DNA of 63,674 nucleotides, the filler included, from Choristocarpus tenellus KU-1152 (taxonomy: Eukaryota; Protista; Phaeophyceae): the NCBI GenBank assembly GCA_964200185.2. It is 15 parts of 15 records of this genome, joined end to end, with 100 filler letters (N's around TTAATTAATTAA, not from the genome) between each part and the next. Parts side by side here need not be neighbours in the genome. Positions count along the whole stretch, not along the records: positions 40,244 to 43,723 come from CAXNAD020019745.1; 14 more parts are not named here. One strand, 5' to 3'. Shown piece by piece: positions 39,061 to 44,518 of this stretch. The stretch's first letter is position 1, and each line of letters starts with the position of its first letter. The notes below the pieces were generated by a model. The model saw nothing but the letters and a program-made list of their open reading frames with translations, was not told where the DNA came from and made no database searches. The translations under genes and the position numbers were made by a program.

Positions 39061-40348
39061 GTGAGGAGAGAGAGAGAGAGAGAGAGAGAGAAAAAAAAAA
39101 AAAGTGTGGATTCTGAAGGAGGAAGGGAGGAAGAGTTGTGCGCTGCGTTGAAGCGTGTGTATCGGAGTACATGACAAAAAATAAAACAAAAAAACCTGTT
39201 GATGCTTTTAACCCTAAACCTTAAAGTAAAAAAAAAATGCAGGGGAGTCCTTTTTTTGTTTTATTCTGTTTCAAAGGGGTCTCTTTTTTTTTTTAACGGA
39301 GATCAATTGTCTATGCCTGTTGTAAGTCTGGCGACACTGAAGAGAGAGAGAGAGAGAGAGACCCTCTGAATGTGACTCAGGTGTATACAGCGAAGCGTGG
39401 GTAGTGACTTTTATTTTTTTAAGATTTTTTTTTATTTATTTTTATGGAACTTTGTTCGGGTGATGCTCTGGGGGGGTTTGAGGCGGTAGATAATGATTGC
39501 AAAGCGGTTGGTTCCATCCTCCTTACCGGTTCAGTACAACATTTTTGTAGTAATAATAATAATAATAATAGTTCGGGCCGTTCTATCAGGTGGAAATATT
39601 TTTCGTAACACGCACATGCACCCCCCCCAAAAAAAAAAATATTGTGTTTTTCATGTTCACCGTATTTTTTTTATTGAGCGCCATCGTTGTTTTTTTTATC
39701 TTTTTCAGTGGACCGAATATGATGTCGATGGTACCGTACCGTATCGGTACCGTGTTGTGTCGAATCCTTTTTTGCTATCGATGTTCTGTTTGAAGCACGC
39801 TTGGCGGAGGGAGGCCCTTAGGGTTAGGGTGTAGTATGATAATGAGTACATACTCGAGTGTGTAAATTACTTTGAGGTGATCGGCCCTTTTAAAAAATAA
39901 AAAAAATAAAAATAAAAAAAGAGAGAGAGAGAGAGAGACAGAAAATTGTGTACACGTTTAACGCCCTCCGTTAAGTACCGCTTTCCACCGGTGTTTGTGT
40001 GTTGGTTTGCTTCTGTATTTTGAAGCCGTTGCATATTTTAGGCGTAAAAATATTTTTGAAGAGACTTCGCACGGGGATGAGGTCTTTGTAGTGATAAGGA
40101 GGCCTACTGAGATTTTTTTTTTTTTGTGGGGGGGTTGGGGGGGNNNNNNNNNNNNNNNNNNNNNNNNNNNNNNNNNNNNNNNNNNNNTTAATTAATTAAN
40201 NNNNNNNNNNNNNNNNNNNNNNNNNNNNNNNNNNNNNNNNNNNGTGGAGTAAGGAAAGGACGTTCAGGGACTCATGTGCCTCGCCTCAGCATCCCAGTCC
40301 AAACAACATTCTGTAACACCAGTCCACCCATTTGCCGATACCACTCAC

Positions 40349-42246
40349 CTGCACAGGATGATACTCGGCTGGTACTAGCCGCAGCCGAGTGTACCCTACC
40401 TCCTGCTCATCAGTCTCGTTCCACCCCTCAACATCCCCTTGAGTCCTCCTAATAACCCCTCCTCCAACTCCACTGTTAATGCTCTCACTACGTTTGCAGT
40501 TGCGCAGCACAGCCCTGTTGTCCTTCTCTCGGAGGACACACTGCCCTTCACCTGATTGCCCCAACTCTCCAGCAGAGTGAAAGTATCTTAGAGGGTATGA
40601 GGTTTGTCCTGTTGGTCCATTTGCGGCTTGGCTTCCCTCGGGGTTTTTTTATGACATTTTCCTACCAAAATATTTCGGAGTAGGTAAAATGTATATGTTA
40701 TGAAAAGGTGTGTCCGCAACAAGGATAATGACACTTCCTAACAAACACGATAGTCAAAATTACATCAAAGTCGCAACATTGGAGTTTGGGCCCCAAATAG
40801 GCGCGACCCCACTCTCTAAGATACTTTGGCTCAGCAACTAGAGCGCCTTGTCTCTCTTTGAAGGTGCACTCCACTGAACCCTTTCCCAAGAGACGTGGGG
40901 GTCTCTTTGAGGACTCCACCGTTGGGTACCTCCCTCTCTTCCAGAAGGGTTTCTTCACTGCCCTAAGAAGGCTATCCTCTGGGGCATGCTGCTCCCACCA
41001 CCCCTCCTCAACGCCTTTCCCCAGTGACCTGAGAACAGCCTTGTTACCAGCAACGCCCTCCATCCCTGCACCACTAAAGTGTCTCACACCGAAGAGTGGC
41101 GGGGCCTTGAACCCTGGAGCTGAGTGCCTATGGCACGACTCAAAGTACTCACCTGATGGGAAAAAATAGATATTTGGTGGGGACAACACAACAGAGAGGT
41201 GAGGTGTGTTGGGAGGCAAATTGCATTGAAAAGCAGAGTACATGAAAGATTATAAGAAGTGAAGGCACAAACGCTATCATCAGGAGGATGCATAGGACTG
41301 TTGGGGGAGAGAGGAGGGTAGTGCGGAGCTGCTCCATTGATATGACGAGTTGGAGCCCTCCCCTCTATATTACACTCATTTACAGTGAAATTTTGTTTCG
41401 ATTACTCAACGTCTGTATGGCAAGCACTGTGGATTATACACCTCTACTATCCTATTTGCTGATAAATCACAAAAATGCGGATAACTTTGAGGAGGGCCCA
41501 AAGCATTTAATTGGGTAGAGTTGTTGAAACCTTAATCGATTGGATCGTACATGTAAGCAAAATCGTAGACTACGAGCGATGAGGAATCATGGTGTCGCAA
41601 GCACCAATGAGTGATATGCGTAGTCAGGGTAGAGCCGTGTCCAATCAGGATCATGAATCCAATGTTGTCATTTTGATGAATTTTGGCCATCGTGTTTGTT
41701 AGCAAGTGTCAATATTCTTGCTCTGGACACGACTTTCATAGTATTTTATATACTCTCAAATCCGAAATATTCACACAGAAAACCGAAAAAGGTCAGATAA
41801 AAATTGTGGGAAGCCAAGCCCTGAACGGACAACCAGGGCAAATCCCCTGCCCTCGTAAATGTTTTGACTCACCTGGTCCAAGGACTATCCCAGGTTCACC
41901 CACGACCTCCATCCAAACAGCCTGGCCATGGTAAGTGTCCTTAAAGTCGGCGGTGTACATTATCGCTGAAGAGCCAAAGTATCTTAGAGAGTAGAGCCGC
42001 GTCCATTTGGGGGTCAAAATCCAATGTTGCGATTTTGATGTAATTTTGGCCATTGTGTTTGATAGGAAGTATCAATATCCTCTAGACACACCCTTTCATA
42101 GCATATACATTTTACCTGATCTTAAATATTTTGGAGTAGGAAAATATCATTAGAAAAAGTTTGGGAAGCCAAGTCCCAAATGAACAAACAGGGCAAAACT
42201 CGTACCCTCTAAGATACTTTAATTTTGAAGCACGATTGAGTACCAG
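40349..42246 (-). CDS. Unknown gene fragment with weak ApaG-like motif (VVGEPGIVLGPGEYFES); proposed exons 42246-42218, 41982-41873, 41152-40825, 40586-40349
   Basis: ccag| acceptor at 42247; CCAG|GTGAGT donor at 41872; tttttcccatcag| acceptor at 41153; CAG|GTGAGT donor at 40348. The frame is continuous and stop-free once the two MITE bodies are removed. Confidence 0.65.
40575..40832. mobile_element. MITE family A, 4-bp TSD (agca), exonic; candidate intron 40824-40587 (-)
   Basis: agca|GAGTGAAAGTATCTTAGAGGG...CTCTAAGATACTTTGGCTC|agca. Confidence 0.93.
41609..41870. mobile_element. Old degenerate MITE family A at the 5' end of an intron
   Basis: Family A body recognisable; TIRs eroded. Confidence 0.75.
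41971..42225. mobile_element. MITE family A, 4-bp TSD (tgaa), exonic; candidate intron 42217-41983 (-)
   Basis: tgaa|GAGCCAAAGTATCTTAGAG...CTCTAAGATACTTTAATTT|tgaa; orientation opposite to the 40575 copy. Confidence 0.93.
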
Positions 42247-44518
42247 CTGGTAGGCGAATGGGGAAATGGTGAGTAGAATCATGTAGATCCAACCCCTCAT
42301 CTTGGCTGATATGGCAGAGCCTGAGCCTCGCAAACAAGGGTGGTCCGCCATTCATTGTTGTGTTGTGGGTCATTGGTGGAAGGAAAGGTTGAGGGTAAGA
42401 GATATCATGCGAGGCCTTTGGGCTGTGGGTGGAGCAAGGAACGCCTGAGGGCATTCCTTCTCACTGGTACCCAGGTACATCTCGATTTTCATACGCCCAC
42501 AAGATCCTACTTGGAAAGTGGTCTACATTGTCGAAGGTATTCGATATTTTGGATGAATGAAAGAGGCGAAATTCCTCCTACCGTTGAGAACCTCTTTCCT
42601 ATCCCATATCCACAGGACCGCTTGGTCTGTGGATTTCTTCGATCAGCGTTCTCCACACATTAAAGATTCAACGGCAACAAAAGCAACGAGACGCTTACAG
42701 TAAGCCAAGTCCCTGTGTGTTGAAGTTTTCCTTACGTCACTGCTGACATGCCTAGAGTGGTCGTCGTCCAAAGGTCAACCCAGACCGGATTGCATTTGCA
42801 ACCAATGAAGATCGTACACAAGCAAAAGTTTGGACGATGAAGGTTAAGTCTGGATGCCTGTCACGCTTGTGGCTCCAAAAACGTTACACTCGGAGGCAAG
42901 AAGCCCACATACGATCTCCGCCCCTACCCTACGAACACAAAGGTCCAATCGATTGCCCATATAGGGTAGGGCCTAGACGTGTTCCTGCTTCTAACGCAAT
43001 ACGATTCACCTTCTATCTTGTGCTGATAGAGACTCCAAACGGACGATCAACCAGCTTTGAGAAGAGATCTGTCCTTCCGATGCTCTGCCCCTCCAGGTTC
43101 CAAGCTCCGCTGAACCAACACTCTATATAATAGTGGCGATATAGTATGTGTCTCGATTCATGGTAAATGTTGTACGTACTTGCCACTACCTCTATTCCTA
43201 CTTAATATTGAACTATTGTAGTGTGTTTTATCATTCGAACAATCTGGTGGGGGTTGTTGGTCGTTGGTTGTTGGTCATACCTGGTCATGCTTTGTCAACA
43301 ATATCACTACTAAGTTCTACAATAGCAGTAGCAATAGTGGTACAAAATGGAATTGATGTTTTGCACCATCTCTGATCAAGTTGTGGATGGCGTAGTATCC
43401 AACAATCTACGGTGCACTCCAAACTGTTAGCTTCTCCTCTGCTATTTGTTGGTAGGTGGCGTTATCAGTGCCTAATACTTCGTCCTATCATCCCCCTGTC
43501 TCTCGCTCTCGCCCAACATCGTCACGCTGTTTCTCAGAGCATGAGGATATTCCGGCAACAGGCGATGAAGGGGATGGAAGTCTACAACCGCGAAGAAGCT
43601 TTCAGCACAAAAAAGCTTGAAAGAGCTGATGTCCGAGCCTTGAGAGGGACAGCTTTATAACATAGGCTACTCATCTGTGTGTTCCTTGATACGATACAGT
43701 TCCACCAGTCAACACTGACTGTTNNNNNNNNNNNNNNNNNNNNNNNNNNNNNNNNNNNNNNNNNNNNTTAATTAATTAANNNNNNNNNNNNNNNNNNNNN
43801 NNNNNNNNNNNNNNNNNNNNNNNCTGCCACCCCCCCCAGATACTTTGAGTCGTCAACCTCCACCAGGTTCACAGCGGGCGGGGCTGTGATGGCGGCGGCG
43901 CAGAAGTTGAGAGCAAGAACGGATCGGCATCAGATGACCGTGAGAAAGAAGACGAGGGAGGGGATGAAGACGAGGGAGGGAACGGACTGCCAGACAGGGA
44001 GGATATGGGCGAAGGGGGGTCTGTCGGCAGTGTTCCTGGTGCGGAAGAAGAACAAAACGAAGAGGGAGGGTGGAACGCGGGCGTTTGCTGTACTGAATGC
44101 AATGCTCCACCTACGTCTCCGTGAGTAATGTAGTTGTAACGGTACACATGTAGGGCGGAGTGTAATTAATAACGTAAGAATGGTTTCCATCCAATCCCCA
44201 GAACAGATAGATACGTTGTATCTTTTCAGCGGCGCACGCCATTGAACCGGTGGAATGTTGCGGGGTCCCTCTGTGTGCAGTGCTGCGGTCGCTACCCCCA
44301 CGTCTCTTTATTTGCCACTGTCCGATTGTGTGTTAATGCACGTACATCACCGACTGTTGTATCTCACCTGTACTACTTCGTGCTGTTTTGCGCCGCCAAT
44401 TTCGTGGTTCTTCATAACCGTGGATCCCTGCGTTGCGTTGTTGCGCCCAATTAATGATTTCGAAAAATACTATCCTGTCTGTTTAACACTCTCGTTCGAT
44501 GACACGCGTGACAGGTAT

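Follow-up and report, generated by a model that had tools for sequence, protein, structure and literature searches.

Transposons that have inserted into exons can be spliced out near their own ends and leave a scar, as happens with maize Ds and dSpm and with C. elegans Tc1, and this splicing, which has been shown in RNA, is leaky and uses multiple sites. The introners of Aureococcus sp. are DNA-transposon copies that carry both splice sites and leave an in-frame scar of +12 nt (10.1101/2022.06.06.494994, Fig. 2F-G). The introners of Polarella glacialis and A. anophagefferens create introns in both orientations in classes 1, 2, 3, 6, 7, 8 and 10, and introner classes 13 and 14 have 4-nt TSDs (10.1101/2020.10.14.339549). 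Introners with TIRs and 4-bp TSDs have also been described in Symbiodinium, and IR/DR introners in Amoebophrya (PMC7789003).

The locus analysed here belongs to Choristocarpus tenellus KU-1152 and contains two elements, named E1 and E2, within one minus-strand reading frame. An earlier note on this DNA had proposed that both are copies of a MITE which generates introns independently of its orientation. Judged from the sequence and from the comparisons described below, this introner claim is more probably false than true for E1 and E2, while the elements themselves are real and of an ordinary kind.

Materials and methods

The analysis was confined to the piece 40244-43723 (CAXNAD020019745.1, assembly GCA_964200185.2) of the window, that is, of the whole stretch of 63,674 nucleotides along which all positions are counted; the splice signals of other gene models cited in the earlier note (15555, 29179, 30943 and 32503) fall beyond this piece and were set aside. 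The contig comparison made use of two public runs (X1 and X2) of one organism, neither of them on record as RNA, at a likeness of at least 80%; the summed contig depth obtained in this way does not equal copy number. The homologue searches of the host frame were carried out exon by exon.

Results

The features of the two elements are listed below, the proposed introns being candidates read from the sequence alone.

41971..42225, unstranded: E1, a 255-nt non-autonomous TIR element, delimited by inverted-repeat comparison and contigs
42226..42229, unstranded: E1 TSD copy 1, 4 bp, TTCA (gene strand)
41967..41970, unstranded: E1 TSD copy 2, 4 bp, TTCA (gene strand)
41983..42217, minus strand: proposed TIR-to-TIR intron in E1, 235 nt, GTATCT..AAG (candidate)
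40575..40832, unstranded: E2, 258 nt, opposite in orientation to E1, both tips intact, GAG..CTC
40833..40836, unstranded: E2 TSD copy 1, 4 bp, TGCT
40571..40574, unstranded: E2 TSD copy 2, 4 bp, TGCT
40587..40824, minus strand: proposed TIR-to-TIR intron in E2, 238 nt (candidate)

The presence of two copies of one family in opposite orientations, each with a 4-bp TSD, was confirmed by these coordinates and by the alignment of E1 with E2, in which 217 of 265 columns are identical (82%); both TSDs are perfect. The inverted matches found in the piece (111 nt and 65 nt) place the elements far beyond chance, and a chance repeat was rejected as their origin given the abundance of the family. Both elements are short (255 and 258 nt), lack a Pfam match or long ORF, possess terminal inverted arms of 18-25 nt, and have RNA folds with z = -5.5 and -3.4. 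On the minus strand, the proposed introns begin with GTATCT after 8 nt of the element and close with CTCTAAG 12 nt before its end, so the GT donor 8 nt inside one end and the AAG acceptor 12 nt inside the other, reported in the earlier note, exist in both E1 and E2. The read-through stops that it placed inside the elements (42112 and 40698) also hold as facts of the sequence within the piece. Exon-by-exon translation agreed with its statement that the removal of 42217-41983 and 40824-40587 leaves 8+12+4 = 24 nt, in frame and with stop-free exon pieces. Since this remainder is automatic for any copy, it was rejected as evidence of splicing, and the caution that the frame alone is no proof was well placed.

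The formula previously given for the TIR, G-N4-AAA/GTATCT, is accurate in its GTATCT part, while G-N4-AAA does not describe the gene-5' tip of E1, which is altered. At this tip (42221-42225), three of the five terminal letters differ from the same end of E2; it likewise departs from the loose-end consensus (706 and 513 contigs), and its letters are supported by one exact contig. The probability that three of five tip letters would change by decay alone is 0.001-0.04. With the normal family tip, in the orientation of E1 and in phase 0, a TGA falls within the retained 8 nt, whereas the altered tip of E1 gives no stop there. The earlier claim of stop-free splicing in both orientations thus fails for the normal element: one of the six orientation/phase classes reads TGA, and E1 sits in precisely that class. 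The insertion of E1 would have been null at birth unless the source copy already had the altered tip. The tip change is the one that a spliced, selected allele would need, and it is weak evidence for splicing because a case with a stop would not have been reported by the earlier reader.

The two runs yielded 38,246 and 27,341 related contigs at a likeness of at least 80%. The depth summed over E1 and E2 reached 1.0-1.6 million, compared with about 20 for contigs unique to the locus, and because depth is not copy number, the size of the family may be given only as many thousands of copies, with tens of thousands probable. Hundreds of contigs leave the element at shared end points and continue into unrelated flanks, whose consensus is AT-rich with ATAT adjoining the element end. 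By all features tested, namely short length, TIRs, TSD and dispersed high copy number, the family is a MITE. Sola2 termini were reportedly described by Bao et al. in 2009 as following GRG..CYC, a pattern that the GAG..CTC ends of this family fit, and these ends together with the 4-bp AT-rich targets point to a Sola2-like superfamily. The family resembles Sola2 in its short TIRs, 4-bp TSD and AT-rich preferred target, Sola2 TSDs being 4-bp AWWT/ATAT (PMC3627910); it differs in that the TSDs found here, TTCA and TGCT, are neither of them AWWT. No transposase is encoded in the piece 40244-43723, and neither a TIR pattern scan of metagenome, genome and viral collections nor an Rfam search gave a match. 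No sign of human DNA, a toxin or a virus was seen. At the edge of the piece, the interval 43608-43723 is the border of a further repeat of high copy number, with a summed depth of 31,708 in X1 and truncated by the piece end, and one of the listed contigs joins it to an end of the E1/E2 family.

The host frame was divided into the following parts, which include a third family copy, named E3.

42226..42351, minus strand: host frame piece 1a, ATG at 42351 or 42300
41873..41970, minus strand: host frame piece 1b, ending at a perfect CAG/GTGAGT donor
41153..41872, minus strand: ordinary-looking intron with a perfect donor, a pyrimidine tract and CAG, an in-phase join, and E3 inside it
41555..41870, unstranded: E3, an older related subfamily copy, low end approximate
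40833..41152, minus strand: host frame piece 2a, open frame
40349..40574, minus strand: host frame piece 2b, ending at a perfect CAG/GTGAGT donor at 40348

The coordinates of the ordinary intron were corrected to 41872-41153. Three occurrences of the motif CAGGTGAGT were counted on the minus strand, at 41872, 41152 and 40348, against an expectation of 0.03. Across the four pieces and the in-phase intron, about 236 host codons run without a stop or frameshift, although about 3 in 100 substitutions would create a stop; in simulation, the chance of the 201-codon open frame around E2 was 5e-5 to 1.6e-3. Codon-position composition differs as well (three-base periodicity p=0.009), and downstream of the second ATG piece 1a has a hydrophobic stretch resembling a signal peptide. 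The host frame therefore looks, from its sequence features, like a gene or a recent pseudogene.

The ordinary intron is flanked at both ends by the 9-mer CAGGTGAGT (41145-41156 and 41867-41875), so that the site of its acceptor doubles as the top-ranked donor of the piece; a skipped or alternative exon, or an origin by duplication, would be possible explanations. The interval 41153-41297 (minus strand) is a candidate alternative exon of 145 nt, in phase with piece 1b, and its acceptor is the highest-ranked of the piece. It reads as a hydrophobic peptide, as its T-rich composition would give anyway. Piece 2a is also overlapped by a plus-strand, antisense frame (40801-41169) that stays open for about 120 codons and has its third positions in common with the minus frame.

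At the host locus, three family copies lie within 1.7 kb. E3 is 63% identical to E1/E2 and lacks the GTATCT/AAG motif; its first letter falls on +3 of the ordinary intron, where the GAGT at its tip forms the donor letters +3 to +6. Its flanks (AGGT and ACAT) no longer match each other. A GAGT..CTC element at an AGGT target would create a perfect donor together with a YAG acceptor, and would be removed without a scar; such an insertion would, by its sequence, offer E3 and the E1/E2 family a second, cleaner route of intron creation. The idea that the whole ordinary intron is one E3-type element with an AGGT TSD was rejected, as E3 reaches only to about 41555 and the stretch 41172-41520 has a low copy number.

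The TIR donor makes 5 of 11 U1 pairs and ranks 46th among the 206 GTs of the piece, compared with U1 scores of 8.5-9.5 for the host gene's three own donors. Judged by pyrimidine content, the acceptors stand fifth among 233 AGs, but they end in AAG. In the RNA folds, donor and acceptor are both paired in the terminal stem of 14-20 bp, and the recognition of splice sites buried in a stem is usually hindered, although introners that form hairpins are known. Among random TIRs 14-25 nt long, 13-37% contain an in-frame GT/AG pair, and 4-16% do so under stricter rules. Inside E1, the donor at 42115 (7 of 11 U1 pairs) is stronger than the TIR donor, and like a further one at 42205 it is in frame and stop-free to the same AAG; the stronger internal donors of E2 either lie outside the frame or are preceded by a stop.

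The host exons gave no Pfam match above the cut-off. Piece 2a, searched against 1.84 billion representatives, gave one match, which was spurious (a tandem repeat). Against the 90% database, in a search that sees only targets of 0.55-1.75x query length, neither exon piece (2a, 2b) nor the antisense frame had a match; metagenome tblastn and the Atlas search were likewise negative, and none of the ten ORFs of the piece was present in the ORF collection compared. Language-model recognition of the exons was low (1315 and 1236).

By contig depth, the entire region is a low-copy repeat. Paralog contigs over the exon pieces are 9-10% different and 2.5-3.5x deeper. In one X2 paralog contig, the alignment ends at 42226, the edge of the E1 TSD, with 66 letters left over, and in another paralog contig it ends at 40834, in the E2 TSD, with 13 letters left over. 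From the points at which these two contigs cease to align, the paralogs appear to lack both insertions. Among the joints listed, none matched either proposed intron, the contigs not being on record as RNA. Two further X2 paralog contigs begin or end their alignment exactly at 41216, with unaligned remainders of 134 and 247 letters; other copies may therefore carry a different insertion or a rearrangement. Upstream, 42479-43128 has several paralogs at about 85% identity and at 6-10x single-copy depth, one of them on a 2,195-nt contig.

Between the host copy and its paralogs, the 24 differences in 2a and 2b comprise, in the frame of the earlier note, 8 synonymous and 16 non-synonymous changes, the neutral expectation being 6.5 synonymous (P=0.32). 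The corresponding omega is about 0.75 for these 24 sites with both lineages pooled, and strong purifying selection on the host frame was rejected (omega <=0.2, P=0.0015). Such near-neutral differences fit a redundant, dead or fast-evolving copy. In the plus-strand frame over 2a, 6 of 12 differences are synonymous.

Discussion

The best explanation of the locus, in which moderate confidence may be placed, is that E1 and E2 are ordinary MITE insertions in a redundant gene copy and that the splice signals of the TIR are a by-product. An abundant Sola2-like MITE, mobilised by a transposase encoded elsewhere, would have inserted twice into the exons of one member of a small, fast-changing gene family. 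The other gene copies appear uninterrupted, which would make this one cheap to lose; it was most likely silenced by the first insertion, and by the time of the second its DNA would no longer have been under constraint. The TIR would retain its GT and AAG because the transposase, and not splicing, needs that sequence. Both the loss of function of the host copy and the Sola2-like superfamily are what we infer. Against this explanation stands the open frame of about 236 codons, in which a dead copy should have accumulated some stops or frameshifts. The perfect TSDs indicate that the insertions may be young, and this possible youth, along with the choice of an open frame by the earlier reader, makes the intact frame less telling. 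It is also opposed by the altered tip of E1, which abolishes the very stop that splicing would leave in the product, and by the high rank of the acceptors (5 of 233). Moreover, the substitution test comprises 24 sites with lineages pooled, and fast-evolving live genes can show an omega of about 0.75.

It is possible, if unlikely, that the spliceosome uses the GTATCT donor and the AAG acceptor of the TIR, so that 235 and 238 nt would be removed, eight residues added, the gene copy preserved, and the tip change of E1 selected for loss of the stop. This would be consistent with a frame open over four pieces and an in-phase ordinary intron, with the low chance of the 201-codon frame (5e-5 to 1.6e-3), the periodicity (p=0.009) and the three perfect donors (0.03 expected), and with the decent pyrimidine tract ahead of the AAG. 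The three changes in five at the E1 tip (P 0.001-0.04 by decay alone), by which the TGA was lost, argue in the same direction, as does E3, the copy without the signals, which is the one lying inside an intron (n=1). Precedents also exist in Aureococcus (both sites, +12 nt) and Polarella (either orientation). However, the donor is weak, the AAG acceptor is of a rare kind, and both are enclosed in a stem; the normal element stops in one of six orientation/phase classes, and that class is the one of E1. The substitutions are near-neutral, most copies lie in AT-rich DNA, and no conserved host gene showing an eight-residue insertion was found. The full proposal is unlikely: in it, the symmetric TIR of a Sola2-like MITE would supply donor and acceptor, exonic copies in either orientation would become introns that add eight residues through the ordinary spliceosome, a later change of the E1 tip would have revived the allele, and the GAGT ends of the family would also complete a donor after a host GT, as at E3.

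It is improbable that the exon model is wrong or that there is no gene. The donor at 41152 and the acceptor at 41298, both ranked first in the piece, would define another in-phase exon of 145 nt, leaving 2a and possibly E2 intronic, and the ORF 41149-41337 is open in that phase; alternatively, the host frame would be a G-rich frame of a decayed low-copy repeat, open by composition. The plus-strand frame over 2a, also open and with 6 of 12 differences synonymous, the absence of homologues, the low language-model recognition (1315 and 1236) and the low-copy repetition of the whole region favour such readings, but they leave unexplained the roughly 200 open codons that extend across the two sides of E2 and end at a perfect donor. 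Splicing at other or mixed sites (the E1 donors 42115 and 42205), with a partial or aberrant output from E2, is very improbable: the donor scan and frame counts would allow it for E1, but E2 has no in-frame alternative donor, so a full protein would still need the weak TIR donor.

As it stands, the result is a new, very abundant MITE family, which is useful for annotation only. If splicing is true, the element would be a target-independent introner that needs nothing from its insertion site. Introns would then arise in five of the six orientation/phase classes and leave an eight-residue scar in proteins, linking intron gain to protein-sequence change, and the sixth class should be absent from live exons, which offers a sharp genome-wide test.

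In the part of the literature covered, no description was found of a single symmetric TIR that yields both splice sites and a 24-nt scar. The novelty that the earlier note saw holds for this combination only in part, as introners with both sites, working in either orientation and adding residues have each been published, in Aureococcus and Polarella. Because these features are already described separately, E1 and E2 would represent, if splicing is true, a new variant at most and not a new kind. The introners of Polarella and A. anophagefferens draw at least a portion of a splice site from the TSD or from flanking DNA and are represented by hundreds of annotated introns, whereas the sites of E1 and E2 lie within the elements, 8 and 12 nt from the ends, and give two candidate introns. 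The Symbiodinium and Amoebophrya introners resemble E1 and E2 in the 4-bp TSD with TIRs and in a hairpin joining both ends, but they use one site from the TSD or non-canonical sites and occur in organisms with relaxed spliceosomes, in contrast to the perfect CAG/GTGAGT donors of the E1/E2 host gene. Aureococcus introners share with E1 and E2 the donor and acceptor on the element and the in-frame scar (a candidate here), and Ds/dSpm and Tc1 share the exonic transposon, the sites near the ends and the scar. The Aureococcus scar, however, is +12 nt (4 of element and 8 of TSD) and is known from annotated introns and an orthologue, and the splicing of Ds/dSpm and Tc1 was shown in RNA, while the +24 nt of E1 and E2 (20 of element and 4 of TSD), with both sites drawn from one symmetric TIR, are predicted from the DNA sequence.
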